64,000 nt of DNA. It comes from Bugula neritina. Lineage: Eukaryota > Animalia > Bryozoa. Below the pieces are notes generated by a model that was given only the letters and a program-made list of their open reading frames with translations, was not told the origin of the DNA and searched no databases. The translations under genes were made by a program, and so were the position numbers. The stretch covers positions 18,521,700 to 18,585,699 of the forward strand of contig OZ037768.1 of NCBI GenBank assembly GCA_964035545.1, written 5' to 3'. Below are positions 9,221 to 64,000 of the stretch, one piece after another. Within the stretch, counting starts at the first letter, position 1. Every line of letters starts with the position of its first letter.

Positions 9221-12200
9221 ACGTCTAGCCTCTCATCTCTTTCACCATTAAACATTATCCTGCATCAAATGCTGCTGCTACATTGTTTGGACTTCTAATG
9301 GATATTTCTGTTATAATTTCTATCCAACATCTAATTATTCGTATATTATTTTTATTTTTCAAGTAATGGTCCTTTATTATTTCATAAATAATATTTCTTA
9401 TACCAGCTATAATAGAAATGGTCATTTGATTTATCACGCTGTAGTAGTAGTACTAAATAAATTATTTCTATCAGAATTAATAAAGTAACTATATGGTATG
9501 TTACCATTGATGATCAACTCAGTTTTACCTGAAATGTGAATGATTGAATCAATTATCAAATACTCTGTATTCTTTCATTTTTGTTAAAACACCATTTATT
9601 GCATTATGTACTCCTGGTTTACTATGTCTATGTATTTGAACATGTTTTAAATTGTTGCAATATGATTTAGAATTTGTTTTATTAAAGGTTTTTGTTAAAT
9701 TATTTTTATTATTGCTATTTAGTCATACTGTCTATAAGGTAAGAGGTTAATTTATTACAAAGGCAATCATCAAGTTATGTTAATTTGTAGAATTTACGAG
9801 TTACACATTGGAAACTATACTATTTATTTGTTGCATTTTACACATGAACTATATTTATTTAAATATAATTGGTGAAAGTCTATCAACATACCCATGACCA
9901 AATTTGTTAACTTTTTTATTTTGGAATAAAATGCTCTGTTAAATTTTAATATGCTCAAAGCTATCATTTAGAGTCACAAATTTTAAATTTAGAAAGTTTT
10001 AACAGTTTAAGTCTCAAATATTATATTTTTCTATTGACCTGAAATTATTGAAGTAACCAGGGACTGGTTTTTATCATATACACAAACCTGCAGGTATAGA
10101 CATGCAAACCAAGTGCACAGATAAGCTCTACCTGCATGCTGTATGTGTGATTGTAGTACAATACTGACCTCTGCAGTATATGTGGCTCTCTATTATATAA
10201 TTATATATCATAGGTGTCCTGGCTCAGAGCAAGGCAGTCTTGAAGCCTCTGCAGCTTACATAAATTATTGTCCTATAACTTTCCTCATATATGTGTGTAA
10301 TCAAATACATAACCCCAGCTTTTGTTGCTTTCTCAATTCTCAAAGCTGCACATCTGTAGATTTTACTAATGAATTTATAGAAGCAGAGTATAGATTTGGT
10401 GCTTAGAAAAGGGAGAATGCAAATATTGATGTTCCATCAAGTGTTCACAAAAGTATTTTAAGTCATGCAATGCCTTAATTAATGACTATAAAATAAACTA
10501 AACTTTACCTGAAGTATAGGAAATATGCCAACCTAATGTTTTGGAATCACGACAACACATATATACACCAATATATTATGTTTTGTGATGTGCTGACGGC
10601 TTTTAAAGCATTATGTCATTCATTAAAGTCAGTTACTGTGATTTCAAAGTCACATACAGTTGGGTTAGTTAAGCAAGATTTTACAATGATTAAAGACTGT
10701 TAAATTGTTAGAAAATAAAATTCAAAAAAATTAACAAATGCAGTTGTAATCGCTAAAATGAATTTAGCAATTAAGTATGTTTTTATGAAGCCTAGGTTTT
10801 AGCAAATGCATATATAATAGCAGAATGTCGGTCAAAAAGAACATCATGTAAGCAAGAGAAAAAGCATTTTTGCTCATCAATATGTGTAAGAAGGATGCTT
10901 TATGCAAACTAATTAATGTGTAATTATGCAGTAACTACTGTAATTAAATAATTAATTGCTGTAACTACTTACTAATTGCTGTAACTACTGAGCAGTATAA
11001 AAATAAAGCATGATATTTCCTGTAACCTTTTTTCAATCCTACATATGTGCAAGTTGCATGTCAGGTTTTCTTAACTTTTCTTAAAACTTTATTAAGTCTC
11101 ACACAAGCTTCAGCATTAAGCTCCAGCTTGAATTATTTTGTAAAATTTATAAAAAATATGAATTGCTTAAAACTTTTAAACATGCAACTTCTTATTACTC
11201 AGCGTGTTCATTCTTTGGGCAGAAGTTACACTTGAATGTTGTAAAACAAGAGCTGTTAATATAAATGTCCCTTTTTGTTACAGGCCCAGTTTCTGTTTCA
11301 TTTTATGTCAAAATATTGGATTATTTTTGCTTTCATTAAATCTGATATCACACCCTGCTTTTTTGTCAACTTAATTCAGCTGTTTTCTCTTTCTTTCAAG
11401 AATTTTTACAGTTTTGGTAGAGACTTGCCTGTTAATATTTTAGTAATTTGACCACTATAATAGGAACAAAACTCTTTGCACAATATTGGACTATCAACAC
11501 GCAATTTTTGGAAACAAAATAATGAGATTTTCATGGCTATCTTGATTAGTATTCATTGTATAGTTGCTAAAAATATCTTGCAGTCAGCTTATAATTCTAT
11601 TACATTCCTTTTTACCAAACATAATTGAAATGTTGTACATTGATCGATTTAAATTACTGAATTTGCTAAAAAGTTCCGACATATATAATATATAAAGCTC
11701 TAAATATATTGTATTGCATTGTATAAAACTATAGAAGCTGCAAAACTCAGCGCAATATACATGTTATGATGCATGTTATTGTTTTTCTGCTAAATTAGTT
11801 TGACGTCTGGCAAAAAACAAAATCCTACGGTGTTATTATATTCACAGGAATGACTAAGCCAATTATGCTTGCTTAAAACTCTTAACAATATCTTAATTGT
11901 TTCTTGCATTTTGTGTTTTTGTGTAAAAGAAAGTAGTATATTGATTCAACTATTATAATCAAAATAGTTCCAAGTACAAATATGATTTTGGCTATACAAG
12001 ACTTTGCGTATGTAGACTGGCAATATTCATAGCTTTTAGAAACAGCTCATGAACAGGATGTAAGCAGAAGGACAGAATCTCTAATACTTATAAGTCACAG
12101 CTAAACTATCCTACAGGAATTTAATCGACTGACTTGTTTATCAAAGTTTACTTCATTCTTATCTACATTTTGTCATGTAGAGAAATACCCTTATACCTGA

Positions 12201-12286
12201 AACACTTGGAGCTAGATAAACTCACACAGCTGTAACAATATCCACACTTTGCCTCCTATATAGCGTGTGATTGGATAACTGTTACC

Positions 12287-15200
12287 ATGGGTGGTGTATA
12301 CAGCACATTGAGCTCATACTTTGACTCTGCTGACCCTCCACGTGCACACAGAGCTGAATCCATTGTGTCGCTGCCTGGCAGAAGAATAAACACAAGCGGA
12401 GAAACTTGCAACTTTCATGAACCTGTCGAGCCTCCATCAGGTAAGCTTCAAACTGTAACTATTTCAGTTGCTCACGTAAACTTAAACTATATTGGAGGCT
12501 TTTTAAAACTGTTTGTTGTATGCTTTTCTACCCATGAATTTGTTGTTAATTTCAACACTTCTAAAGTGTTAAGTATAGTAGGAAGTTGTGAATCTTTAAT
12601 AACTGACGTTTTCTGAAATTTATTTAAAACTGGGCTCGCAAATTTAGACTACATTTTTAAGGAACCCAACGACTTTTTCATTTTTCTGTTTTCAATTCTG
12701 CATACAAAATACATTTTTATATTTCTATTTTCAAGTACGCTATACTGAACAGTTTAAATCGAACACACAGCATATTCTTGCAACACTTTGGTTATAAACT
12801 ACAAACAGCAATTTACAATCTAATTCTATATATGCACTTACATTCAATAACAATAATAATTGTTGCACATTGTCAACCATTAAAATTAGAAAAATTTTTG
12901 AATCAACATGTCAATATATTATTATTATACACTGCATCAAGTAGCAACTTCTAGTAACTATGAGGATACACAGCCATAGTTCTTTTATGTTCACTTACAG
13001 TTAGATGTACTAATGAGACATTGTTTACACATTATATGCAATCTTTGCCTCATCTTTTTCATATGTGTGTAAAGACATGTAATATGCTTTCTTCACAATA
13101 CCAATGACTCACTGATACATGTACCAAGTTTTGATATTTTCCAAAAAACATAATCTGTTTATATACTAATTTCCTCATTTGCATTCTAAATATTAATATA
13201 CTGCTATTCTACTGCTTTGTCATGCAACTTTATCAGTGTAACAAATTTAATCAGTTACAATCAGTGTAACAATTTCACACATGCACACACATATCATAGC
13301 TTCTTATTGAGATAGTTTCAGTGAAGACTAAGAACTATGTTCTAACATTTTTGCTGGCTGTACTATTGTAACCATGGAACAATGCATACTTTATATATTA
13401 TATGAGCTATATATTGATATGCATTTTTTACCCTGTGCAATGTAACAGCTCAGTTTCTCTCTGAAGACTTTCATGACGGCTTGTGTCAACATTTATGTTA
13501 TGTGAATTTTCATTCATACTTCGCATGCACTTTATTATTATATCCATATATATACAATGCCTGCAGCTAAGGACTACAACCTCTGCAAGCTAAAACATGG
13601 CTACTTTTGATTATGGTCGAAGAATCAAATTCACAAATCTCATCAGCTTCCATGCCACAGCAGGTTAATTTGTTGGAAAAGCTTTTCGTTTAGTGTGGCT
13701 ACCTGTTACTAATTTGCATGCAGTCAGATTTTTCCTTTGTATTTTAAAGAGAGTATATAAATGGTCACATCATCCCTACATGAAGTGTAGAGTTACAAAG
13801 TTTGTGTTTGAGTGGTTTGTGTGATACCTTCAATTTTTGTCAGCAGATAATTATTTAATAAATAATTTAAATGTTAAGTCATTACAATTATAATACCATA
13901 AACAACCTATTCACGTTACTTGTGTTTAATGGCATATCTCATACAGCTATATAGTTATAAAAAATGCTCGGCAGCTAAATAAAGATTAGTACAAAAAAAC
14001 AGTGTAGGACTATAACTATTTTTGCAAATAGACAATAGTTTACAGCTCTGTGCATAACATAGACAGATGTAATGTACTATCATTACATATTTCCAGTTTA
14101 TCACTAATTCAATATAAATACTTATCAGCTTAATGTACTCTGTTTTTAAACTGAAGCACAAAAAATGTTTTCTCTGTCAAACTTAAATACATATCAGACA
14201 GAGACTTTGACTGTTAATCACAATACATCTGCATGCAGTTATGAGAAACATTTAGTGCTATCAGCTATATAATGTGTAGATGTCTTACAAAATGGCATAT
14301 GAATTGTATGTTGCATCTATTAATATACTATTGCTGAAACCTCAACTGCATGTATAGTGTGCTATAATTACAAAATACACTGAAGGCTTATAGTGGATAG
14401 CTTGTGCTTGTTCTACTCTGAAGGTGCCTGGATGTGCCAGGATTTCTAGTGAAAAAATTTGGTTTCAAATAGTTTTTTATAAATTTTAATTAATTTTTTA
14501 TAAGCAAGCCTTCTTATACAGGCTTTTTATAATTAAATTGCATGTTAATGTTTCTATCTGTTGGATTTTGTTTGCTTGAAATTTTTTTATGAAGGAGTTT
14601 ATAAAGATTTTATTCTAATTACAGCAGACACTCCAAAGAAGCCCAAGAAAGCAGTTGAAATAGAAAATGTAGATCTGTGTATTGATGAGAACAGCAGAGA
14701 CCACCACACAGACGAGTTGGTATTTTATGTTTTGTTATATAATAATATATATCTATACACTACGCATATTTATAATATGTAGAATATGCGTTATATGCAT
14801 CATGGATTATATAATATGTGTTATGTAGATTATTTATAGTTTAAAATATTTATGTTATATAAACATGCACTATAAAAACTATTGGATTTTGAAAAAGTAA
14901 TAGGCCTAATTGTATTATATATATTAGGCAGAAGTAATAAGAAGAATTGGGCAGTAAGCTACCACAAATGCATTCTGTCTAGTTCATCTCCTAGGAGATA
15001 TTTGCTTATAATATATTGAATGAAAGTAGTAGAGCACCATTAACGTTTAACGTTAAACTCCAATTTATTTTCAAGCTGTCAGAAATAATCATTCAAAAAG
15101 GAAAGTTGAAAATGTAACAATATATTATTATATTGACAAAAAGATACTGAACCATAATAGTAGCAAAAAACAATGAATCATGTAACTATATCCTTGTATA

Positions 15201-35600: not shown

Positions 35601-38600
35601 TTACAGTACATGTACTACACAACCACACTATCTTACACTACAATACTACATCATACATACTACACTATCTACACTTCACTATACATGTTCCACTATTTAT
35701 GCTATACTACACCACTACACTACACAAACAATACTGTTCACATTATCCAGCACATACTAAGCTGTACATACTGCATAACATAGACTACAGTACAAAATAT
35801 TGTTTATCATATACTGTACATACACTTCATTACACTTGCTACACTGCACACACAATACTGTTTAGACTAGACCCGCCTACATAAACATACTACCAGGGAT
35901 GTAGTGGTACCCATACGCCGTATGGCCTAGAAGAAAATAGACTGTTCTAGGCCATACGCCCGTATGGGCATAATATTTTTGAAAGATGATTAGTGCACAG
36001 GATAGTTAGGGCCACTGAACTGAAACTATAACCCTGGAAAGGATTATAGTTCAATGGTTAGGGCATCCTCACTGAGAATATCATAAATTTCCGCTCACAA
36101 TCTAGTTTAAGTTCTTGTTATGTTAATGCTATGTGGGTGGTATGCGTGTTGCCTACTTGTGATTGTTTAGCCTGAGATTACACTATGAATAGTAAGCAGT
36201 CATCAACATTCCATCTTCTCATCTCTACATGTTCACTGAAGCGCGAAGTGCTGTGCATTGGTGATTGCTAAGGGAAAAATATTTCATTTCAGTGTGTAAA
36301 TCACTAATTTGTAGAAAATCTATGAAGGCTATTGAAAGGATAAAAAAATTTGCTGTGCATAAATTTCTCAGGTTTCCGACAGTGTTTGTTCTATTCCAAT
36401 ACCATACTTTCCTGCTGAGATATTTGGCAGATTTTGAAAAATAAACTTTTCAGATAAAATTGGCCAAAATGGGTAGTTTTTTGTCCATAACTTTGCAAAA
36501 AAAGTATTGAAAACTCGAAAAAGCAGGTGCTCTGAGGAACAGGAAGATCTACAACATGGTTTTTAAATTTTTATTCTAGCACAATTAGGCAGTGACAGCT
36601 AGAAGGTTTACCTTATATATCTTGTGTGGACTTGTATTTTGTCAATAAGCAATGGAATTTAAAAAAACCAACATGAAATCCAGAAATAAAATCAAAATGT
36701 CTTCAAGAAACAGTATCAGTTGTGTAGGAGAGGTTAACGGTCTACAGGTACTATGTCCACATTTTGCTCAAAAACCTAGCGTTATTACATTTTAATTATC
36801 AATGCAATGAGGTTTTGCAAACTGTACACCACCATAAGTAACCATTTATGTTTGATTGTACTAACATCTGGCTTTATATTTAATCATCTTCTAGGTTAAC
36901 ACATATTAAACCTGTCAAATTTTTTCATTTGGGGTATGTTTCCTTGATGTGTCTAGTGAAAGTTCAGGGGTTTTATTTTAAAACCAAGCTAACATACTCT
37001 TCTTGGGTGTGCTTTATTGTGTGTTAGAAGGTGTGATGGTATCTCCTTATGGTTTAGACTAATACTCTAATAAACTCCAATTAGGTTTTTAACCGATTTC
37101 TGCTTGCCAATGAGTTATCAATTCAAATTGCTCTTTATAAATAACAAACACACATTTTCTGATTTGCAATCTGCCTCTCTTCTGATCTATTATTCTTTTT
37201 CTGGGCACGTCAGTCTATTAGTTATTAAAAAAAAATCAGGTTGCATTTGGAGAGCACTTGTTACCTGCCTCTATCCTTCCATTTTTTTGAGATCTTCAGC
37301 AATTTTTCTGTATAATTTGGACTTGGTGCATGTCAGAACAAACCTAACTGCAGTTGAGTAAGACTACATTTAAGATTACAGTCAACAAGTATGGGACAAT
37401 ACTGAATATTTATATAGTTTGCAGCAATGTAGCTGGTATGGTATGAAAATAATAGTGAGGTGCACATTTCAACACAGATTTTTTCAGAAGAATTAGAATT
37501 CACAATGGCTTTAAATTGCATAAATTTGCATCAGAAGAGCCCTGAGGGCTTCGGCGGCCGGGGCGCTGCCCCGAACCCCGCCGGGGGCCTGGGCGGCCCC
37601 CTGGACCCCCGGCCTGAGAGTATGGCCTAGAATATTTTTGCCACTACATCCCTGCATACTACATGAATATTTTACCTGCGGCCTGTTGTTCATAGCAGCG
37701 TGATGTATCAGACTCAACCCATACTCATCTTGCTTCATCAGCTGAGACATCTGAGACTTTCTAGAGAGTTCTGAAAAGATGGACACCAGCCCTCTCTGAG
37801 CAGCCACCTTCAGACCAGCTGGAATATTCTAGAAAACATACCATAGTAAAATGAGAGTTGGTTACATACTTGCGAACAGCACTGGCCTTCTGCCTGCAAG
37901 GCTATAATATATGCATGGCAAAAATTCCACAGGTTATTAGATGGTTCTAAACAAATGTTGTATATATTATTTTGTCATAATTATATGTGCTTATATATCT
38001 TGTAAACTAATAATATGTAACCACCACCCAAAGTATAAATGTGGAGTAGACAATGCAGAGCAGAAGTTCCAGTTTGTGACAGCATGCGGAACTGAAGTAG
38101 CTCAACACTGAACACAAATCATAAAACGTTACGACACATCACATATGTATATGAGTATACTGCTTTAAGGGCAAATCTGTTGAATACTGCTTTAGATACT
38201 GCATTGGACAGTGCATTGAATTACTGTATTAAATATTGTATTGGATATGATAATAAAAGAGCAATAATGTAATCTGAACTCAAAGTAAGACACATGAAAG
38301 GTGTGAGGAAGATAGGAGCAGAAATCACTTAGCAACTTGTGTGCAATCAGCCATTTTGTAAAGTCTCCAAGAAAATAAAGCTGCTTTTATTTTATAAATT
38401 ATATAATACAAATAATTTTACTGCATGAATAATTTCCAGCTCATTAAATTAAATGTAAAACTCTGTTTAATACTTCCTACAGAGCAATATGCATTGGAGT
38501 TATTGTCACTACATCTATTATTTCTCTTCGTTCCAGTTAATTGGTGATGTACAAAGAGTTTGCTTTGAAATAAACATTTGCACAAAATTTAGAGCAGAGA

Positions 38601-47125: not shown

Positions 47126-49392
47126 ATGATATGCAGCATATAAATAGCAAATATATTAATAGTGGTTAGCATAAGCAATCATAAAGTGTATAAGAATCAT
47201 ACAGATAGTATATTAAACTAGCTGACATACTGCTTGCACTCAGATATAGCTGATTGCATCATCTTAATAAAATATTGATTAATATTATAATTATCATTCA
47301 TATTGCAATTTTAATTAAAGTAAATTCTTAGCCCTCCATTATTCACTGAGTGATAGGACACCATACCAAGTTTTACAGACTTAATCCTTGAATATTAAAA
47401 TATAGAATGTCTGTGTTAATGTAATCTTCTCACAAGAAGGCAATAGAAATATTGTATAAAACACTTGAATATATTTGACATCTAGGTAAAGAATTTAAAT
47501 TCTCACCAGTTATCAGAAAGCTTTGAGTTGCAGACCTCAAGTGCCAGTGCATAACTTAAATCTCCTTCTAATTACAGATGACAACAAAACCAAATCAGTT
47601 TTATACAGGTTGTTAGTTATTGTTAGTTATTATTCCCTACCTGCCCCATGAAACTCCATGATGTGTGGGGACTTAGACTCGGCTGCACCTGTGTCCATAT
47701 TGACGTCAAGTTTCTTCCTCCACCGATCAGTGAACTTCATTCTCTTCTCTCTCGGGATGTATGAGCCGTGCCACAGTGACTTCATCATGTAGTCAACGTT
47801 TGTTAACAGCTGGCCTATCTAAAGCCACAAATATAAAGTTATTGCATTTAAAAACCCTTATTAAACATAGAAAGAATAACATTCCTTGTTTGCTTAATGG
47901 TAAGAAATTTAGTTATGATTATAAATTAACATGACTACTGTAATAAATATTCAATCGGGCTGTAATTATTAAAACACTCATCAGCTTTAAATCTAAATGT
48001 GGAAGAAATTTTAATATAGTGCAACTCAAAGTTTCGAACACAGCAATGAGAATTTAAGTTACCGATAGCAATTATATATTTGTACATCTATAACAACATA
48101 TGTTGACATTCCAATCCTCGGTAGCATTTAAACAAATCTTGACTAACTTTGGTGTCTATATAGGCTGGTGGAAGCAGCACACTCGTACTGCAATCAAAGT
48201 TAGATTCTAAAGAGATATTTGGAACTTGGTTAAGTAGAAATATTCCAATAGTGAGTTCTCTAATTATCTGGTGAATCACTCTAAAGTCATATTTGTCACA
48301 GCCTTCCTCTTCCGGTATCTAAATACCAACATAAATGTTTTAAATAAACAACTTATAGGTGAAGGAAACTCAGTAAACTTAACAAAATAATATCATTCAA
48401 AGTATATAATCACTATCTTTCCATAGATCAATCTCAGTTTGATCTCCGCCAGAACTGAGTTCAAGCTGAACAAACGGACCAGCTCAGATCGACTGAGATC
48501 GATCTTTGATATCTTTCCATAGATCGAACTGGCCGAGATCGATCTGAGATCAATCCACGGAAAGACAGTGATTATACCAGTATAGTATGATATAATATGC
48601 AATACAACATACTACAAAAATGCTTACTATTGGTACTGTTATTATTTACTTTACATTCTGACATTGACACACCAACAGCACATTACAAAAACAAGGAGAT
48701 AATATTTTTGTTCAAAACAAAGTAACAAATCACCAAAGTATAATTCAGTTCGGACTTACCAATATCCAACAATGACTAGTTTTCAGTGGGGTAAGTTGAC
48801 TAATGAGACCACCAGGTGGCTCTGTGGGTATTTTATAATCATCTACACTCAGCATCCAATGATTCTGCAGATATGACAGACACTCCTGGGTCTCATAACG
48901 GTCTAGACTATTGAACAATGTTGAAGTTGTCAGTTTTATCCTGGCGTCATAGACGGCTGAAATATTAAGTCATTCTTATTATAAAACTACTTTTAAATAA
49001 CGTATTTAAAAGCAATATTTTTTCAAAAAATAACATTTTTATATCAAATAATTTTGCTAAAAATGTTGCTTAAAAATTGACAAAAAAACTAACATAATTG
49101 TATTGCCAGTGTTTACAATGAAACTAATTTCCCAAAAAGAGGTTTTTAAATTGAAAACAGTTAGAAAAGAAATAACTATCACAAGCCTTTCACAAAAAGA
49201 ATTGCATTTTTGTAATATATTCAAACTAAAAACAAGCTATGAGTACAAGAAAATTATACAATCTAGATAAGACATTGTCTTGTACTTAAAAGCAAAATAA
49301 ATCAGTTATTCCTTATACTTTCAAATAAAAGAAAGAAAGAAGTTCATCTTACGTGACATCTGATCATCGCCATTTGCTTCAACCTTGTCCAT
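23608..49392 (-). CDS. ANKAR: Ankyrin and armadillo repeat-containing protein; 29 core exons
   Basis: Exons in transcription order: 49353-49392 (ATG uncertain; frame open to acceptor at 49457), 48760-48956, 48148-48318, 47641-47818, 46884-46980, 46302-46488, 45087-45237, 42242-42346, 40979-41150, 40228-40411, 37676-37828, 35347-35416, 33146-33347, 32637-32845, 31808-31912, 31120-31212, 30810-30979, 30098-30251, 29414-29507, 29014-29161, 28688-28841, 28333-28494, 27895-28001, 27466-27588, 26347-26505, 25456-25573, 24785-25091, 24389-24435, 23608-23741, all phase-consistent. ANKAR-typical segments: HQIIRELTIGIFLLNQVP, LPPAYIDTKIGQLL..DYMMKSLWHG, KTERELPP, ankyrin repeats (TPMLLAASSGALE), ARM repeats (VKEQGACALWAIAG), GLPSQSLEKNGGP. 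Confidence 0.95.
25301..25386 (-). mobile_element. tRNA-derived SINE head fragment
   Basis: Reverse complement GAGCAGCCGTGGTCTAGGGGTTAGAGCG...GGGTTCGAACCCC matches the 7508 SINE head. Confidence 0.85.
25742..25971. mobile_element. MITE with internally repetitive inverted repeats and CCTAAC core
   Basis: AGGTAATAATGGCACAAG..AAAGTAGGTAAA on the left is inverted on the right (TTTACCTACTTT..CTTGTGCCTTTATTACCT), with 15-bp tandem units at the right end and an internal CCCTAACCAAACCCTAA. Confidence 0.7.
28212..28315. repeat. Intronic minisatellite (TACTGACACAT units)
   Basis: Repeated TACTGACACAT(T/G) and GCTGATACATTAG units just downstream of an ANKAR donor site. Confidence 0.8.
30250..30339 (-). 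repeat. 20-bp tandem repeat of a splice-acceptor site (4.5 units)
   Basis: ATCTGCAGAACATAACTGTA units; on the - strand four units contain TTCTGCAG|AT. Confidence 0.9.
30585..30826 (-). repeat. 21-bp tandem repeat of an exon end plus splice donor (~11 units)
   Basis: GTATAGCACTTACCAGAGATA-like units at exact 21-bp period; on the - strand G|GTAAGTGCTATA. Confidence 0.9.
31230..31378. repeat. Degenerate TACACTGTATA-type repeat
   Basis: Repeated TACACTG/CAGTGTATA units in both orientations; explains the overlapping short ORFs here. Confidence 0.7.
31440..31540 (+). mobile_element. Diverged SINE body fragment
   Basis: GCCATTGG...TCCTTAGCCCA...GGGGTTCTCACAGGGA matches the 3' body of the 7508 SINE. 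Confidence 0.55.
34062..34169 (-). CDS. ANKAR: Candidate phase 1-1 cassette exon of ANKAR (NTQKKEESDDSITEASTDQDSDQFNEYSRSVVFRQ)
   Basis: CTCAG acceptor, AAG|GTAATG donor, 108 nt open in the ANKAR frame. Confidence 0.65.
35105..35146 (-). CDS. ANKAR: Candidate phase 1-1 cassette exon of ANKAR (SRNYLLDGDENST)
   Basis: TTAG acceptor, GTAAGT donor, 42 nt open in frame. Confidence 0.55.
35894..37654. mobile_element. Non-autonomous hAT-type DNA transposon (1761 bp)
   Basis: Perfect 14-bp TIRs CAGGGATGTAGTGG / CCACTACATCCCTG and perfect 8-bp TSD CATACTAC (35886-35893, 37655-37662). Sub-terminal TATGGCCTAGAA repeats and a GC-rich block at 37545-37615. No transposase ORF. Confidence 0.93.
39225..39445. 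repeat. AGCATATAGTAT 12-bp minisatellite
   Basis: Tandem AGCATATA(G/A)TAT units; explains Y/M/L-rich spurious ORFs. Confidence 0.85.
39914..40095. mobile_element. Copy of the 2181-2370 repeat family, flanked by a ~75-bp direct duplication
   Basis: AGGTGCAGTAA...TACTGCTCCTAAATG; the flanks 39839-39913 and 40096-40169 are direct repeats. Confidence 0.8.
41151..41395. repeat. ~16-bp minisatellite composed of RFX X-box-like motifs
   Basis: GTAACCCATAGCAAC (41162), GTGGCCCATGGTAAC (41178) and GTAACCTATAGCAAC (41284) fit GTNRCC-N0-3-RGYAAC, with many near matches between them. Confidence 0.8.
41621..42033. mobile_element. PIF/Harbinger-type (Tourist-like) MITE
   Basis: ~75-bp imperfect TIRs (GCCTAGG.CCACACTGTGC...AAACCACAA.TAGCAAAGGTGTCCACTGTA) and TTA TSD at 41618-41620 and 42034-42036. 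Confidence 0.88.
45296..45449 (-). mobile_element. 5'-truncated tRNA-SINE copy
   Basis: Reverse complement matches the 7508 SINE from the B-box through TAAGTCCTTAGCCCACTT and GGGTTTCTCACAGGGA. Confidence 0.85.
47030..47124. repeat. (CA)n/(TA)n microsatellite
   Basis: Direct dinucleotide run. Confidence 0.95.
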
Positions 49393-53589: not shown

Positions 53590-55242
53590 CTGCAAGCACA
53601 AAGTCAGTTATGCTCGGCTGATGATGCTTTCAAATATCAATTAATTGATATCCTTGAATGTTTCGAAGGGATCAAAATTTTAGTTTTTATAAGCTGTTTG
53701 CATGAGGAATATTGTATCACATTATATATACATATAATTAAAATACAGTGTATAACTATAATTGCTGACTAGCAACCAAAATATGTGATTGTAAGTACAC
53801 AGGATAGTTAAGGGCATCCTCCACATAAATATGATGAATTTGTAGTCTCAGTTCTTAATTATTATTTCTCTGTGGGTGGTGTGCGTGTTGCCTACTAATC
53901 ATAATATAGCATGAGGTTTAGCCGTGACCAATAAACAGCCACATCTACTAGAGCTGCACCTCTTCGAATTATTATTATTTGTGCAGTCAATGTTGAGTTT
54001 GCTCAGTGTCTGTGGTTAATTATCATCAATTTATCACAGGCTGCATGTATTACAACATGGCATTCTCTTCTCATCAAGTTACAGCTCAATAATAAGCCTA
54101 CTATTTGGTGATTGAAATTATATCAATTTAAATTATTATTTTTTACCCAGTTGGATTACAGAAGCCCTCAATACTTTTTTAATCTCGTTACCTTTTGGGA
54201 AATTGTTTCAGAATGGCTATGTAACAAATAATCTAAATTGTACTCCCTTTTAAACTAAGGTTGAGATCATTGACTATTAGCTTTCTATCCATAGATGCCA
54301 TTGGCATGACTGTAACACTTTCTGTGAGAGAAGGCAGTTCTAGTTCTACATCTTTTTAATCAAAGCAGCAAATAGTGATGATATGACTCATCAAACACAG
54401 TGGCCCTGCTTAGTAAGGTAGCATTGTGAAAAATACCAATATGAGAAATATAGTATGGTTATGAGTTTATGGCTAATTTCTATCCCAAACATACATATAC
54501 AATGCATATTTTAGATTAACGTTTTATTTTGCTATCTATACTACAGATTTTTCAAAGCTGTTTAGTGTAAGGCAGTGTACTATATTATATTTTAAAGAAC
54601 CTTTCTATTGAACGGGGATGCAAGGATGTTTTATGGCCTTGTGACTACATCACTTCATAATCAATTATCTGTTTTAACATTTAACTAGTGTAGTGAAAAT
54701 AATAAATAACATACTGGAGCCACTTGAACCTTGTAAGAAGCTCACTTCAGTGATGGTAGTTTACTTGTTAATTGGTAATTTAACTAGGTTGGTGCGTCTA
54801 CGCACTATAATAGAGGGAATTTAGGAATTTAAGTCATGGGTGCTTAGGTTAAAATATCAAAAATTTTAATTGATATAAAAATAAAAAATGCAAAACTTAA
54901 ACTAATGCTAATCAACAATGCTTATATATAAACTTTCCATTATAAAACTTGTTGCCCAAATTTGGAATTAAACCACAGACATTTGGTTTTTAAGCTGATG
55001 AGCTATGACAGTCACATCAAAACTTCTAAATTCTGCCTTAACCCATTGTGGTCATACAATTAGCTCGGGTGCTGTTTTCGATAGCTACAATTAATATTTG
55101 CTACAGCCAGACCCACACAACCTGTTGTTTTTGTGGTTGCATTACGTAGGAGCAGTTGCTGCTTGGAATTACTAAAATACAAAAATTGCGCCTTTTCTGA
55201 CTCAGTGCAGGGTTATTCAGTTCAGTTACAAACAAGATAGCC

Positions 55243-58200
55243 ATGGGGAAAGATTACAATGAGAATCAGTGTGGATTTTTAGCAACAATTTACTTTATAC
55301 ACCTTAAATCAGGTGCTGAAGTAGAGCATTTCAACAGAGAGTTTAAAGTCACAAAAGGATTAACTGCCAAGGATTATAGTAGAAAAAGAAAGCAAGCTAG
55401 TAGGCATTTCAATAACGCCCTATCCTACGTTAATAATAATAATGAGAAAGAAAAAGATAATTTTGTTTCCTATTTCTCATTTCAAAACTTCAAGAAGCTG
55501 TCAGCAGCAAGTAAACTAAAGCACAACTACAATAATTGCCTAGAATGCGCTGAAAACCATAGACCAATGTGGATAATGAAAAGAAGCAACAAATGCCATC
55601 TAGAGACTCCTGCTAAAACTGCTTTGAATTCTTTAAAAGCTGTATTGGACAAGACACCGACTGAGATAACTGCTACTGTGGTGGATGATTTTGTTAGAAA
55701 TGTAATAAAACCAGTCACAGAAAAATTAAAAGGAACACCCTTCTCAGCAAAGTTATCTATTGGCTCAAAGCGTAAAGCAGTGACAGTTGACGCAGTCCCT
55801 AAGAAGGTTCGCAGAGCCATCATCAAGTCTGCCAATGATGAAATGAATGATGAAACCACTAATAAAGATTTCATATCGCTCTATGCATCTAAGCAATCAC
55901 AATCAGAGTGGGATGTGCAAAGAAAACGATCATTTGGTGAAATGAGGCAAAACAGAAAGAAATCACACACCGGCAGACTAACTGATTATACATTCAATGA
56001 AATAGTTGTAAAATCAGCTTTAAAAGAAAATGAGGACATAAATTGGTCTGCTCTAAGCAAGTCAGCAAACTTGAAAAATGCCAACAATAAAGCTCCTAGA
56101 AACGCAGGCCAGGTAAGACTTAATCAAATTGTAACTACTGCTGCTAATTACTTTTTTGGCAGAGTTACCATTTTTTATTTTAAATATGTTATCTATGCAG
56201 AAAAAGTTTGACAAGATTATCACCATTACTTTATTTCATCTTTGATGGATCTTCCAAAAACATAAATTGCACACACACATAATATATACTGACATATATA
56301 CACACACATAATATTTACTTACATATATACATACATACACACATAATATATATGTCATAGAAGTTGAGCAAAAGTAATATTTGCAAATGTAGTACATCTA
56401 TCATCTATGAAACAGGAGTGTATTGACTTGTTTACCAGGTTATGAAAGAAGTCGCAGAACATGTTTTGAAGCATCCTGTACAAAGAAAGCCAAAAACCCG
56501 AATATCATGGCTAAATTACAAAAATCTCAGTCTAAATATCAAACGAAAAGCTTCTGTAACTAGGCTAAAAATAAAGAAAAAGCGGATGATAGACAACGGA
56601 GAGATTGATGTTGGGAAAGCCATAGTACCAATAGAATACCAGACTGTACAAGTTCAATCAAATGGCACATTGGTAGGTTGATTACTCCTAAAGTCAATAA
56701 CTGAGCTTTTCAGCACACTTGTACTATGTTACAGTAAGTATAAAGGACTGATAATATCATTTCTTACTTTATCTAGTTATTATTTAAAGTATTTGGTATA
56801 TCATTCTTTAATTTTGCAGGTCAAATCTAAAAAAGAGGTATCTGGTAGAAAGTTCTCTCTTCTAAACATACGGAGAGATCATCTCGCCAGAATGGAAAAG
56901 CTGAAGATTTTAAGATCTGCAGCTGACATAGAAAAGATGTCTGTAGTAGATTCACTAGCTTTCCTGGAGAGAAATGGTAGGATTTGAATTAAGTATATCC
57001 AGAGGCTCATTTGTCTTTAAAACTTGTTCTACAAATAAATGATACTGATTTTCTTAACATAATGAACAACATTCTATGACTTTTGAGATTTATGAGCTAC
57101 ATAAATCAAAACTAGCGCTGCAATAGCTATAGAAAACTTTATTTGAACAAAAAAAGATATTTACAGCTAAAATGCTTGCAATGTGGAGCAAGGCTTATCT
57201 CAATATATCCATGCCTTGTGGAAATCAAAGAAGCCTCAAAATTTCTGTCATCTTTTTAGAGATAAGCTTTTTTAGACTAAGACCAAGTAAATATAGTCAA
57301 TATTCCAAAGGCCCATTGCTCCGAAGGTGCATTATTCCGAAGGTGCATTAGTCTGAAAATTGGTAGATATAGTATTAAATCACTGAGAATATCATAAATT
57401 TTACTCACAATCTTGCTATATTATTGCTAGCTGTGGGTGGCGTGCGTGTGGCCTACAAGTTTGTAATTTTTTAGCCTGAAATTACGCTATGATGCTGCCT
57501 CAATTAAGGGCTCCATCATCTATCAACATTCCATTGTGGCTGCTCCATAAACTTAGTACACAGCAAGCTATTCACTAGCCTGTCAGCTAGCAAGCCTGCA
57601 ATTAGTAATCTATGCATTAGTTTCTCTTCATCTCCAAGTGTTCACTGAAGTATGAAGTGTTGTGCAAGGGTGATATAATAAGTATTTTTATTTCACAGTT
57701 CATGTAAAAATGACAGCTATAGGCAATGAACTCATAATATCCAGTTCAATGGCTATAGCGACTGCAATTCTATTCTAGCTACAGTCAGTCAGCTTATATA
57801 GGCCCTTCACACGTTGACTATTAACTGAAAAACTAAATTAAAAAATATTAAAGGAAGCAAACATTTTGGGTCTACTGTACTGCATTTATGATAAGCTTAG
57901 AAAAAGTTTACCTTGTATTTTATAAAAAATAGTTTGCATTTGAAGTTGGCGTCAAAAAATTATTGGTATTGAATGAAATAGTAAATTTCTGGCTTGGCAG
58001 TTAATTATTTAATATCACATATTTAATCTCTAAAATTATTTGTAAGCTGCTAAACTGCATTATTCTATGCTAGTATTCTTAATATCAGTAAATACGAGCA
58101 TTGGGGACAAAAAATAATAAACATCTTACTCTGAAATTAAATAACCAAAGCTGCACACCAAACCAAACAACCCCACAAGACATGTAGATGAGGGCAACAT

Positions 58201-61200
58201 TATTAGTATATAAGAGTTCAGGCCCGCCAAATAAAACCTCACCTAACCTAAAATTTGAAAACCATGTTGCAGATCTTCCTGTTGCTCAGACTATGTTCAA
58301 TAAATAATTTTAGTTCTAATAATAGTTCTACTAATTTTCGGACTAATGCACCTTCGGAATATTGCCCAGTCCCCCCTAAAACTACCATAAAAAATCAGTC
58401 TGGAATGCGCAATCACATTGAATGCAATTCTTTAAAATAATTACTATTCAATGTTTAGGGATAGTGGTTGGCAGTATGGACAGCCCCAAGGAACGCCTTA
58501 AAGAAGCCTCGCAAAGTAGACATATGGTTTTGTGGCATGACCATTCAGAAATTGCTGGTAAACATTTATTTATTCATGTATTTTTGTACAAAGAAATGTT
58601 AGTTACATAATCAAGCTGTTCACCAATATATCTTATATGTATTTTTTTCAGGTAAAAGCCACTACTTGTTCATGGTATGGTTTTTGTACGACCCATGTAC
58701 ATACTATACAGATGGAGAGTTTTCAAAGATGAACTGCAAAGTAAGCTGATAGAATTATGCAATCTCAATATAGAACACATTTCAATTAGGGTCATCTTAT
58801 TTGAATTAAAGTTGCTACAATAAGCCAAGCTCTCACTACAGTATTACAAGTGTCGTTTAGTCTTTGGTAACAGCAATTACTAATGACTAGGTGTTTTAAA
58901 GAACAAGTGTTGAAATACACCAAAATATTTTGAAACATAAATGTTTACTTTATGCTAATTCAGGAAACACCAGTCAATGTACAATCAGTGGTGGAATCAC
59001 CTTACATCTATCTACTTGCCCAATCGAACTCTTCCGTTAAGGATCAACTTCTTTATGTTCCTACTCGACTAGAAGACCTTAGAGAATTGGAGGAAAAAAT
59101 TAGCTCAAAAGATGGACGAACATTTACTGACAAACTAAGATTTTTTTCTGGTGATAGTCCAGCAAGGCAACTAGAAGCTGGGCAGCAATGTGGAGGTAAG
59201 AGTGATAAACTATAAATTGTTTACACAGGATGAAATACAAGATAGCTTTTGCTACAATAATAACAATACGTGTTTGACTTATTCCATGTATAAATTCCCC
59301 AAAAAGAATACATATTTACAAGAAACTATATTATTTATGATGAAACTTGATAAAAACATGCATATGTATGTTCAGGAATGTTCCCATGTATGTGTGGCAC
59401 CCAAGACATTTACTTCAGTAACACTAGCAAATATAGCCAAGAAGGAGCTTTCTATAGTTCACAAGACCGCCTTCAGCTGCTCCATAAGACAAAAACATGG
59501 GAAGATGGTTTTACTAAAGGGAACCTAGCAGTCTTTCAGACAATGAAGGTATGAAATTAAGCTGAGTTATAAATAAACACTGGTTGGGAGAAACAGGACT
59601 TCCATGTAATACATTTATATATGAGCAGCAATAATTACACTTTTTCAGACTGAAGGGCTCAGGAATGAATTGTTTCACAGAGGGGTTGCCTATTCAAGTG
59701 CAGAGAACATTTCAGGGCTAAGAAGAATTTTGAATGTTAGCCTAAAAGGTCAGAAAATTTAGAATGATAAGTTTAAACTATATGTGGTTACAGCGTTGTC
59801 GGATGAGATACATAGAAAAAATATGGGCTGCATGAAGCCATAGTAACATAGAATAAATCTTCATCCAATCTTAGTTTTGCATCTAGTGAAAGTAGCGATT
59901 CATTGTTATGTATAGACCCACACAAGCTACTGTGGGCGCACACATGTATATATAATCTTTATGAAAAACTTAGTTACGAATATAACTTAAGCCTCACATA
60001 AGTTTCTAAATACCTACTTTACAGGTGTGAAAAGGCCTCCTGCTCTTCTTTGTACTAAGCTGGAATCACAGATCGATATAGGCAGCTACGAAATTTCATC
60101 AATAGAACCATTACATGATCTAAAAAATGTTATCAACAAAATTTTAAAAGAACTACCTAAAGCTGCAAAGAATAAAGAACTCAAGGAAAAATTGACCAAT
60201 CTTGTTTCAGACATTGAAGGTGAGTAGAGATTCTAACTTGCTAGTAGAAATTGCTAACACACATTTTCAATATTGTCTATATCAAAATTAAATAGCCATT
60301 TCAAAAACAATTATAAACCTATACAAACATGAATTATAGCTCAAAATAGAGAAATGAAGGGAACAGAATGCCGGCTTAATTTGGTAAAAGTCACCATCAT
60401 GCTACAAGATTTCCAGCACACTGAAGATGGGAGAGCCATGTACGTTATGCTAGCAGCATTGACAGAGCTGCAAAGTTTGGCATACATGTGTGACACTAAT
60501 AGATGTCCTAGAACAATCCTCAGGGCATATAATCAAAGTTTTCTTTTTGCCATTAAGTGCATGGAACTATTTGAAAACCCAGAAACTTGCACCAAGCGCG
60601 CTATGTTTGGGATGCCCTTCCATTGCCTTTCAGTGCACTTGCCTGAAACATTGAGACTTGTTTCAGGCAGATCATTAGTAGCCGAACACGCTGAAAGGCA
60701 CTTTTATAAACTAAGGTGCGTACTAAAAAATAATACTAGTACAACAGGAATTTATGCAAAGTTTGTCCACTCACTTGAAAATGAATGCAAATAGCTTACT
60801 ATAGGGGTGCTGTAGAAAGAACTCAGATCTATTTAAATTCAGCCCTGATAATATTACTGTGATATATGAAAACAGTATTGTTTTAGGGAACTAACGCTGA
60901 GGTGCTCCAATAGAAAATCGCAAAGTATTATAGCAAGTGCTATGTTTAGAATAGTGGTAGAAAGAAAGGCTGCTGATGATGCCATTACCAGCTACGGCAG
61001 ACAGGAGCACACTATCTCCAATGCATGTAGTGGCCTTAGCCTAGGACATAACACCATATTCTCAAACAAGTAGGTCACTGTCTGATAAGTAAGAATAGTA
61101 GCTACTTTGTTGTGTATGATATTGCTACTAAACACAGGCAAATATGCTACTTAAAAGTCTATCACTATTTTTACACTAGTTTCCTCAAAGCTCATAGGAC

Positions 61201-61795
61201 AGCAACACTTCACCATTTCCGACGAATTGCTGACTTTCTAGAAATTGGAGAAGGAGTTTGGTTCAAGGTACATGATGGGGGAGTAGAGTTCAAGGATGGA
61301 AAAAACTGCCCAGACAACTACAATTCAGGGCCAATATTAACTCATTTCAGGTAAATATCTTAACTACCTATATACCACTATATATCATATATTGTATATA
61401 TCATACAACAAAAGTAGACTGTTTCTTCCTAAAAATTAATCAAAGAAAATAAAATTAATTAAAGAAAATAAGCTTCCACTTGAAGAAAATTAAATGGAAA
61501 TTCTTTACAACTTGAATCTAAATTGCATGTCCTAGCTTGAAAAAAATTGCATACAAAATTTGAACAGCTACTATCTAATTTTTATTAATTCTAAGCAGTT
61601 TGTTTTATTTAACATGTTTGGTAACCACCAGAAATTTTTTTGTTAGATCGAGAAACATGAAAGACATTAACAACATGCTGAAGACAAGCTGGGAGTTTTG
61701 CATCAGAAATAAAAACTCATTAAAAATTCCACTTTTGTGTGACATGCTGACAGATAAGAAGACAGCTGATAAGCAAGGTAAAATATTCTTTTGAA

Positions 61796-61850
<55 letters not shown>

Positions 61851-62791
61851 GTTATTTATATGTTAATTACAAGCAATTTGAAAAATGAGCAATAATTTTC
61901 TTCTGCCTAAAATGTCTATTGATAAAATTTTAACAGTGTCAAGAAAATATGAAGAAATCAAGCCTGCTATAAGCAATGTGTTGAGTAGTTTGGCAAAGGA
62001 CAAGCATAAAGAAGTAGAGAACTCTATTGCTGTTTCTGCATCCAATACCTTGAATGAAACAGATGAGAAGCTTGATGAATCTTCATATGTGTGTGCTGTA
62101 CCATTGTTGACACAATGTAAGTAATTTTAGATGCTGCCTCCCAATTTTAAAATTACTTATCAATTTGAAATACATCAAATACACTAAGAAAAAATTATTT
62201 TAAATTGGCAGGCCAGACAGAGGTACCAAGCATTTTGCCTAAGAAACTTCAACAAAAGAACACAGTTACTGGTATGTTGCTTTAAGTATGGTTATCATAC
62301 ACATATAACATACTTATTTTCAGTAACATAAGTTATAGTCATTTAGATTTAGAAAATAGAACCATGCAGCTACTATAATGACTTCAGGGCAGCCAATGCA
62401 CTCACATGTAATCTGAAATAATTAGAATCACCCTGGTGTTTTACAGCATATATTTCTGCCCACCTTACTTGCAATCAGTTGCTTTTCAATTTTAGATGCT
62501 ATGAGGAGTCTATGGCCTTACAGTAAAACGATTTTAGAAAGCTTTCTTTCAGCTAAACACCGGTTCAAACAACATAACTCTTGCGTTAATAAATTAATGT
62601 TGAAATCTGCAAGCCATAAAGTAAAGCCATATTTCTTGAAATTTGTTAAAATATTAGAGGAAGAAGAAAAAGCAAAAACCATAAGCAAGTTCAGAGATAG
62701 AGGACTGATTTCTATGGAAAGTAACTCAGAAGACAATTGGAAGATTAAAATTATTAATTATTGGTTGAATCAAATTAATGAGTTTCTATAA
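55243..62791 (+). CDS. RAG1/Transib-like DDE transposase-related protein; 16 exons, 1005 aa to an in-frame TGA at 61879 (frame continues to 62791)
   Basis: Exons 55243-56112, 56439-56672, 56820-56976, 58459-58557, 58652-58740, 58964-59195, 59376-59548, 59649-59748, 60025-60219, 60340-60715, 60887-61069, 61180-61350, 61647-61777, 61874-62116, 62212-62271, 62496-62791, all GT-AG and phase-consistent. Motifs colinear with the RAG1 core: [79 protein letters not shown]. Confidence 0.8.
57298..58364. mobile_element. Non-autonomous TIR element inserted in intron 3 of the RAG1-like gene
   Basis: Left TATTCCGAAGGTGCATTAGTCTGAAAATTGGTAGA (with tandem sub-repeats) is the inverse of right TCTACTAATTTTCGGACTAATGCACCTTCGGAATATTG; internal ACCTAACCTA. 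No clear TSD. Confidence 0.8.
61795..61851. repeat. (TA)n(CA)n(TA)n microsatellite
   Basis: Direct dinucleotide run in intron 13 of the RAG1-like gene. Confidence 0.95.
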
Positions 62792-63298
62792 TAAAATTAT
62801 TCGCATCCTTTTTTTCTATTTTTTTTCTAACTTTAAGAAAAATAAACCTAAATGTGAAACCAAATCAATATCAAAAGATGAAACTATTTTTTCTGAAGTG
62901 TAATTCAACATCACTAAACATGTTTGTTCTAGTTCAACATCATTATGATTAATATTATGACATGAGTCTTACAGTTAGTGTTATTGATACTCATACTGAT
63001 ACTCAGTCTCATGTCGATACTCATAGCATTAGCTGATGACTTTTATTAGATACGTCATTGCCAGTAACAAAATGAATACAAATATATAAAAAAATTAATG
63101 AATAATAATTATAATAATAATATACATTATATTAAATTAAAATAATACTAATAGTATTAGTAATAGTAAATAATAAAAAATTATTATTAAAAATTACTAA
63201 TAGTAATATATTACTATTAGTATTAGCCGTAATGCTAATACTAATAACTATAAGATCATCACTATGAATATTATGTGAGTATTTGCTGAAAAATTTAC

Positions 63299-63454
63299 TT
63301 ACCCTGTCCCACAAAAAATACTTTCACTGTTGTATAATTCCAATCTCAGTTTGTCACTTGGAGAGTGAGAATAATATAAACACGCAGACGGTACCCAGCT
63401 ATCGCACTTTGTACACTGTATAGGTCGCGAATAATGAGCCAATGTAATGGATTC
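63299..63454 (-). pseudogene. PHD-finger-like coding fragment, probably degenerate
   Basis: Translates as ESITLAHYSRPIQCTKCDSWVPSACLYYSHSPSDKLRLELYNSESIFCGTG*. It matches the IQCxxCxxWxxxxC...FC pattern but has P at the His position, lacks the last ligand, and has a stop immediately upstream. Confidence 0.45.
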
Positions 63455-64000
63455 TCATCCTCATTATTATAATTACTGTTGCGTATGTTTTGAATGCTGT
63501 AATTGTAGCTAAGTTGGGCTAGCTTTCTAATGCCTTATTATTGTGATTGTTGTTAAAGCTTTCAGTATAATGTAATTTTCATGAAATACGCATTCCAGAG
63601 TTATTTTCTCTTTCTGCTATTTTATCGTTTTGCATTAATACTGATACTGGAAATTTGTGTGGCTTTTATGAATACCTTCAATACATAGGTTGGCCTATTG
63701 AATTATTCGTTTTCCTTTGTCTACTTTTCTTTTGTTTCTGTCAAGCTTAACTTTCTTTTGTCTGTTGGAACATTCTAGATGTGAATTCTTGTGTATAAAA
63801 GCAGGCGAGTTTCCAGTATAGTTCAGACTACTACTGGAGCTCGCTGGTAGTTGGGCCCTAAGCTGTATCTGATACAATAAAGGTTATCCTTATTTGTACT
63901 CAAATACTTGGCTTATTCTCTCTAACACAAAGAGTATGTTCAGGCACTAGTTGCATTCATAACCCACAGTTTACTACACCATAAATACAGCAATTTGCTT

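Follow-up and report, generated by a model that had tools for sequence, protein, structure and literature searches.

A 16-exon gene in a 64,000-nucleotide stretch of the bryozoan Bugula neritina genome (GCA_964035545.1, contig OZ037768.1, here C4, positions 18,521,700 to 18,585,699; hereafter the window) raises the question of what kind of DNA-cutting enzyme it encodes, and whether that enzyme serves a mobile element or its host. The initial annotation, made from the letters alone, proposed a divergent RAG1/Transib-fold protein encoded by either an unusual intron-laden transposon or a domesticated gene. Judged from sequence, the gene very probably sits in a cut-and-paste DNA transposon that is autonomous and has been active recently; it falls in the CMCT clade (CACTA/Mirage/Chapaev/Transib), in a sequence-distinct lineage of marine invertebrates.

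The gene lies between terminal inverted repeats (TIRs) flanked by a target site duplication (TSD; Table 1). The host termini read CACAG..CTGTG and follow the family motif C(A/T)CAG-N5-TTAAGG. Six full copies occupy five contigs, and all six are flanked by 2-bp repeats (TA, AT, TT, TA, TA, and CT). Compared with the window copy, one on another contig is 100% identical over 11,027 bp, three are 98.5-98.7% identical, and one is about 92% identical; exon 10 finds five further genome matches at 99-100%, plus diverged ones. The frame and splice sites are intact in most near-identical copies; in the C3 copy, the exon 6 acceptor is mutated and an insertion is present. Against the 92% copy, the coding sequence gives a ratio of nonsynonymous to synonymous differences (pN/pS) of 0.27. 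The young copies carry a 537-bp segment (window 63442-63978) that the 92% copy, on C6, lacks.

The TIR has 500 exact matches in the genome (control, 0), and a few hundred short, non-autonomous copies of about 756 bp accompany the full ones. In 20 sampled TIR pairs, mostly of this length and mostly 92-99% alike, the 2-bp duplication is present 20 times, 3-bp and 4-bp matches occur once each, and a 5-bp match never. Two of the 20 (L035 and L036, 85 kb apart on C1) share identical flanks and may be one event, which suggests a segmental duplicate. Together with a 12.4-kb diverged member, all 27 host insertions examined (6 full and 20 short) have a 2-bp TSD, and a 5-bp TSD is ruled out. The intron-laden transposon is borne out by the TIRs, TSDs, and near-identical dispersed copies.

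The proposed gene structure also holds. Spliced in silico, the 16 exons are all bounded by GT-AG introns, have compatible phases, and contain zero internal stops; one acceptor was corrected. The earlier frame implied an exon 11 start at 60950 and a protein of 1160 residues. In RNA-like contigs from four studies, intron 10 spans 171 nt (60716-60886), which moves the exon 11 start to 60887 and lengthens the protein to 1181 residues. The 21 added residues agree with the family consensus. Contigs of four RNA-like runs, whose RNA status is the software's guess, were aligned to 56380-61780 and match eight junctions exactly (introns 4, 5, 6, 7, 9, 10 as revised, 11, and 12). Intron 13 is supported by loose contig ends running from exon 13 to exon 14, introns 2, 3, and 8 are listed without exact joints, and introns 1, 14, and 15 lie outside the aligned stretch. 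In all four runs, high-depth contigs join 56380-57028 to 60018-60120 and to about 63305, keeping intron 2 and skipping most of the catalytic core. They likely represent an internally deleted, defective derivative from other individuals; this derivative was not found in the host genome assembly.

In the corrected numbering, the predicted catalytic triad is D448, D547, and E835, accompanied by C565/C567, H682, and H811/H816. Every motif position in the initial annotation is correct, and the order it recognized (D, D, zinc cysteines, H, zinc histidines, E) is supported; the first zinc pair is CxC here, not the CxxC it had cited for the RAG1/Transib core. A search with exon 10 yielded 420 cluster representatives. 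Full-length relatives of 900-1300 residues occur in Argopecten, Mytilus, Saccostrea, Actinostola, and Branchiostoma, and partial ones in Crassostrea, Pinctada, and Ptychodera. All named matches to the family profile are annotated "uncharacterized" and come from bivalves, a cnidarian, amphioxus, and an acorn worm; mosses, ferns, and fungi contribute none. The window exons align collinearly on the relatives, including the Argopecten protein P0031. WHDHS, GDxPARQFExGxQxGG, CxC/CxxC, EPLHD, H-x4-H, and ExxER are family-wide motifs. Alignment columns D, C, H, H, and E are invariant, and D547 shows no variation in 58 relatives.

Pfam detects a SAP domain only, in 22 of 58 relatives, between the cysteines and EPLHD. 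No transposase family in Pfam matches any window exon or any of the 58 relatives; this includes the RAG1 core (PF12940) and Transposase_21 (PF02992)/DUF4218, to which the similarity is structural only. PDB sequence searches with exon 10, exon 6, and the family profile found no transposase, and the profile found no RAG chain at E<=10. Searches of the host genome with PF12940 and PF02992 gave no match, a result that carries no information because the controls gave no signal either.

Relatives elsewhere end in CTCAG-N5-TTAAGG, with spacing equal to the host CACAG-N5-TTAAGG. The conserved terminus is therefore C-x-CAG, and its likeness to the recombination signal sequence (RSS) heptamer CACAGTG is partial. 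Three of five outside insertions have 2-bp flanks (TA, TA, and CC). Around the genes of Argopecten, Branchiostoma, Mytilus, and L050, a generic search for TIRs gave no convincing pair. The host carries a second, diverged family, represented by the 12.4-kb element in the C6 region 7082395-7101894 (L024/L025), which has an apparently intact gene and a TT TSD; a similar copy on C4 near 15505551-15510086 has a stop in exon 10. This family is mostly 31-85% identical to the window protein by exon, with 15 of 16 exons detectable. Elsewhere, loci L051-L053 hold the 9.4-kb element of an intronless relative in three near-identical copies, with a tandem array of about 3.1 kb (11841-14944; unit of about 150 bp) in the 3′ arm. 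A very divergent intronless member of 1046 residues (P0114, locus L059), from a Tara Oceans contig, forms the longest branch of the tree.

The fold was modeled with AlphaFold2 on residues 440-990 of P0031, the Argopecten core (predicted local distance difference test, pLDDT, 93.5). Foldseek returned 45 matches at E < 0.001, consisting of RAG1 chains, BbRAGL, and one HzTransib chain. RAG1 is the best solved-structure match (E = 4e-8; 12-14% identity); template modeling (TM) scores are about 0.5 for RAG1, 0.44 for BbRAGL, and 0.39 for HzTransib. VIA-align gives Z scores of 16.2 for RAG1 (379 residues aligned, root-mean-square deviation 4.7), 14.3 for BbRAGL, 11.4 for the P element, and 10.7 for HzTransib. 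A gap-free reading of the alignment ends would place model D44 (the WHDHS Asp) on RAG1 D600 and HzTransib D125, and model E427 (the second Glu of ExxER) on RAG1 E962. According to the model, the family folds like RAG1, with an RNase H core and a zinc-binding insertion domain.

The RAG1-type fold first proposed is thus supported, together with the residue order, but a special closeness to RAG1/Transib is not. CACTA (PF02992) predicted structures superpose on the model with TM scores of 0.57-0.60 and Plavaka with 0.57, at least equal to RAG1; moreover, the TSD is 2 bp and there is no RAG1 match in Pfam. The first rank of RAG1 in the PDB probably reflects the lack of any CACTA, Chapaev, or Plavaka structure among the matches there. 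The N-terminal region was also modeled on a relative (pLDDT 84.7, predicted TM score 0.53). It has no Foldseek match in the PDB, and its best VIA-align Z is 5.1. The top rows include helices of HzTransib 25-74 and RAG1 458-508 at Z of about 5, within background and leads only, as is a second SAP-like motif just ahead of the RNase H strand. Exon 1 also holds the first part of a weakly DDBD-like element and the start of a helix-turn-helix (HTH)-like insert.

Because CACTA and Plavaka models match as well as or better than RAG1 and no transposase Pfam family matches, we place the element in a distinct lineage within CMCT, probably neither Transib nor RAG1L. The clade comprises EnSpm/CACTA, Mirage, Chapaev, Transib, Plavaka, ESTA, Lanisha, and RAG1 (Kojima 2025, PMC12730594). 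Its hallmarks recur here: an RNase H DDE domain with a RAG1-like insertion domain, as predicted in the P0031 model; a C(2)C pair and an H(3-4)H pair in the interval from the second D to the E, seen as a conserved H-x4-H with CxC in the window and CxxC in many relatives; and, in the host, CA..TG termini with a TSD in the 2-5-bp range. The element departs from the clade in lacking a Pfam match to any member family, in its CxC/CxxC pair and SAP-like inserts, and in the CT..AG ends of its relatives.

Compared with individual members, the element resembles RAG1 and RAG1L (ProtoRAG) in solved structure, in the order and inferred register of D, D, H, H-x4-H, and E, and in the CACAG start of the host TIR. 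It differs in its 2-bp rather than 5-bp TSD (PMC7204232), low identity, absence of a RAG2L partner, and an N-terminus that has no clear RAG1 match apart from the weak DDBD-like piece. With Transib it shares a single gene, CAC ends, and a D-D spacing of 99 residues (HzTransib 125-224). However, it has 1181 residues against about 500 (HzTransib chains 451-480 residues), a D-E spacing of 288 against 211, TM scores to HzTransib of 0.28-0.39, 15 introns, and a 2-bp TSD where 5 bp is canonical, with exceptions reported. Instead of a CACAATG-like heptamer, the host has CACAGGA and the relatives CTCAGG(G/T). EnSpm/CACTA and Plavaka (PF18759) resemble it in predicted structure, plant CACTA also has introns (PMC4158355), and PlavakaA and ESTA have known 2-bp TSDs; the element differs in showing no sequence match to EnSpm/CACTA or Plavaka, in lacking a second open reading frame (ORF), in its short TIR with a consensus of its own, and in its 16 exons. 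Chapaev shares CAC..GTG termini and the LH and H(4)H motifs, but has 3-4-bp TSDs, and Chapaev3 transposases have 1-2 exons and about 560 residues (PMC4079192). The modeled enzyme would work like RAG1/Transib as a CMCT member that lacks defining features of Transib, RAG1L, Chapaev, and Pfam-defined CACTA. The lineage is apparently without a name, and no description of its motif set was found in the literature searched.

The strongest challenge concerns this novelty. There is a substantial chance, somewhat short of even, that the element belongs to a Repbase-named lineage that has no Pfam model, such as Lanisha, the long-branch EnSpm-1/2_NV, the Aplysia Chapaev group, or an animal EnSpm with a 2-bp TSD. 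Its relatives include oyster, mussel, and sea anemone, groups well covered by repeat databases, and TSDs of CMC elements span 2-4 bp. One Lanisha member is labeled StPi, which we take to be the coral Stylophora. The CMCT tree of Kojima shows Lanisha and EnSpm-NV as separate long branches (PMC12730594). Against this, the reference Lanisha is a moss element with eight ORFs, whereas the named matches here are confined to the four animal groups above, all uncharacterized, and the motif set is undescribed in the literature found. Lanisha and EnSpm-NV were compared by name and tree only. Such a placement is compatible with the mechanism proposed below and bears on novelty alone.

Within our preferred reading of a distinct CMCT lineage, a more specific placement is tentative and rather unlikely: an undescribed superfamily-level marine-invertebrate lineage that is the nearest outgroup to Transib plus RAG1, with a one-subunit RAG1-fold enzyme, CACAG-like ends, a 2-bp stagger, and one branch that is still mobile with 15 introns. 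If true, it would offer a live system for how the RAG fold fixes a 5-bp stagger.

It is improbable that the element is instead a highly diverged Transib or RAG1L whose TSD has shifted to 2 bp. RAG1 is the top solved structure, HzTransib and RAG1 helices are among the best rows for the N-terminal model, the host TIR starts with CACAG as does the RSS heptamer, and reports exist of Transib elements with TSDs of 3 and 2 bp. Nevertheless, identity to RAG1 is low and none of the 58 members matches its Pfam family, CACTA models fit equally well or better, HzTransib scores below the P element, relatives start with CTCAG, the N-terminal scores are background, and no RAG2L is present.

A two-gene layout like that of ProtoRAG, in which the 3′ arm would hold a convergent RAG2-like (kelch-PHD) gene, is highly improbable. 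A minus-strand frame of 51 residues scores weakly on Pfam PHD (E = 0.021, 15.3 bits against a cut-off of 24); however, it has Pro in place of a zinc His, lacks the first CxxC, contains a stop in the 92% copy, and is absent from the diverged host family and the intronless relatives. The 2-kb 3′ arm has no minus-strand frame longer than 63 residues and none of kelch size. The layout was rejected, as no convergent RAG2L gene lies within the TIRs. The 51-residue frame is confined to young copies and is probably a remnant or chance; it is possibly a decayed PHD remnant. Finally, a domesticated, host-serving DNA-cutting gene, as 15 introns, an intact frame, purifying selection, and spliced RNA might suggest, is refuted for the window copy and has next to no likelihood given the perfect TIRs, 2-bp TSDs, six dispersed full copies (one 100% identical), and hundreds of short dependents, with purifying selection expected of an active transposase as well.

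The introns set this transposon apart from much of its own family. Relatives in Branchiostoma, Mytilus, and four ENA assemblies are encoded by single, intronless ORFs of 1018-1184 residues, and that from Argopecten has an uninterrupted core. In the diverged host family the introns are at the same places, with AG/GT at most shared boundaries. Exon 10 is bordered by AG and GT in three contigs of other metagenomes (50-55% identical), one of which shows these signals at exon 9 too. In an unrooted exon 10 tree (124 columns, bootstrap unsettled), intron-bearing rows and host copies form one 11-row clade (98/96), and intronless rows are spread outside it. The introns most likely stem from a single gain within one subclade, the rest of the family being intronless. 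Plant CACTA transposases have 1-6 exons (PMC4158355). TLEWI, Tc1-like elements of bivalves, are a precedent for a transposase gaining introns in a restricted lineage, but belong to another superfamily, have 2-5 introns, and lack TIRs (10.1101/656579), whereas the present element is intact with 15. Among the published transposase intron/exon counts found, higher numbers are limited to domesticated genes; this element appears to combine 15 introns with retained mobility.

A mechanism can be proposed by analogy with RAG1 and HzTransib. The host spliceosome would remove the 15 introns to give the 1181-residue protein, which may dimerize and use its N-terminal helical/HTH region to bind both C(A/T)CAG-N5-TTAAGG ends. 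Two Mg2+ ions would be held by D448, D547, and E835, which would make a nick at each TIR and cut the element out, probably via a hairpin on flanking DNA. The 3′-OH ends would then be joined to the target with a 2-base stagger, and repair would leave the 2-bp TSD. By the same analogy, C565/C567 and H811/H816 would bind a structural zinc, and further, non-specific contacts with DNA would probably come from the SAP-like modules. The element codes for no second subunit; its enzyme would also mobilize the ~756-bp elements in trans, and the need for splicing would make activity host-dependent.

Several points weigh against this account. The fold comes from a relative 25-49% identical to the window protein exon by exon. 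Two of the five outside insertions have no clean 2-bp duplication (one, in repetitive surroundings, fits 4 bp, and the other shows none). The tree behind the single intron gain covers 124 residues and its bootstrap is unsettled, intronless relatives are over-represented since the protein collection favors single ORFs, and the hairpin chemistry is an analogy.

An intact, recently mobile element can be assayed, and comparison with HzTransib and RAG could reveal what sets the stagger (2 vs 5 bp) and end recognition in a shared fold. The family is widespread, and its "uncharacterized proteins" in bivalves, cnidarians, amphioxus, and the acorn worm can now be labeled as transposases. A mobile transposase that carries 15 introns and has intronless relatives is a clean case for studying intron gain and the control of transposition by splicing. 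The account of RAG origin is unchanged unless phylogeny places this lineage beside Transib/RAG1.

Table 1. Features of the transposon, in window numbering
Feature	Position	Strand	Remarks
Whole transposon	53798-64824	+	11,027 bp; contig C4; extends 824 bp beyond window end
Left TSD copy	53796-53797	.	TA; right copy directly after 64824
Left TIR	53798-53816	+	19 bp perfect (22/23); starts CACAGG
Exon 1	55243-56112	+	290 residues; N-terminal helical region, conserved H-x4-C-x2-C site
Exon 2	56439-56672	+	
Exon 3	56820-56976	+	region of first SAP-like motif of relatives
Nested dispersed repeat, intron 3	57294-58365	.	inverted ends; boundaries approximate
Exon 4	58459-58557	+	predicted first catalytic Asp D448 (WHDHS), codon 58539
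Exon 5	58652-58740	+	
Exon 6	58964-59195	+	predicted second catalytic Asp D547 (GDSPARQ), codon 59153
Exon 7	59376-59548	+	putative zinc cysteines C565/C567, 59387/59393
Exon 8	59649-59748	+	with end of exon 7, counterpart of family's SAP-like insert
Exon 9	60025-60219	+	EPLHD, H682 (60114)
Exon 10	60340-60715	+	putative zinc histidines H811/H816 (60621/60636); predicted catalytic Glu E835, codon 60693
Exon 11	60887-61069	+	start corrected from 60950
Exon 12	61180-61350	+	conserved C-terminal HxxRIADFL..G..W motif
Exon 13	61647-61777	+	
Exon 14	61937-62116	+	reached by loose RNA-like contig end
Exon 15	62212-62271	+	least supported exon; not detected in diverged copies
Exon 16 and stop	62496-62791	+	polyA-like signal at 62841
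51-residue frame	63302-63454	-	weak PHD-like stretch; Pro at the zinc His position; not conserved
Right TIR	64806-64824		past window end

Other repeats are interleaved with the transposon family. The nested repeat in intron 3 has at least 49 genome matches, is absent from the older C2 copy, and holds a decayed piece (57380-57665) of the family's short element. Upstream in the window, a 1.76-kb hAT-like, non-autonomous element (35894-37654) has CAGGGATG termini and an 8-bp TSD, and carries a piece of the same short element at 35996-36589; an 82%-identical relative sits in the C3 transposon copy with its own 8-bp TSD. An inverted repeat at 48405-48576, with 48-nt arms that are 83% complementary and spaced by 76 nt, is possibly a small miniature inverted-repeat transposable element.

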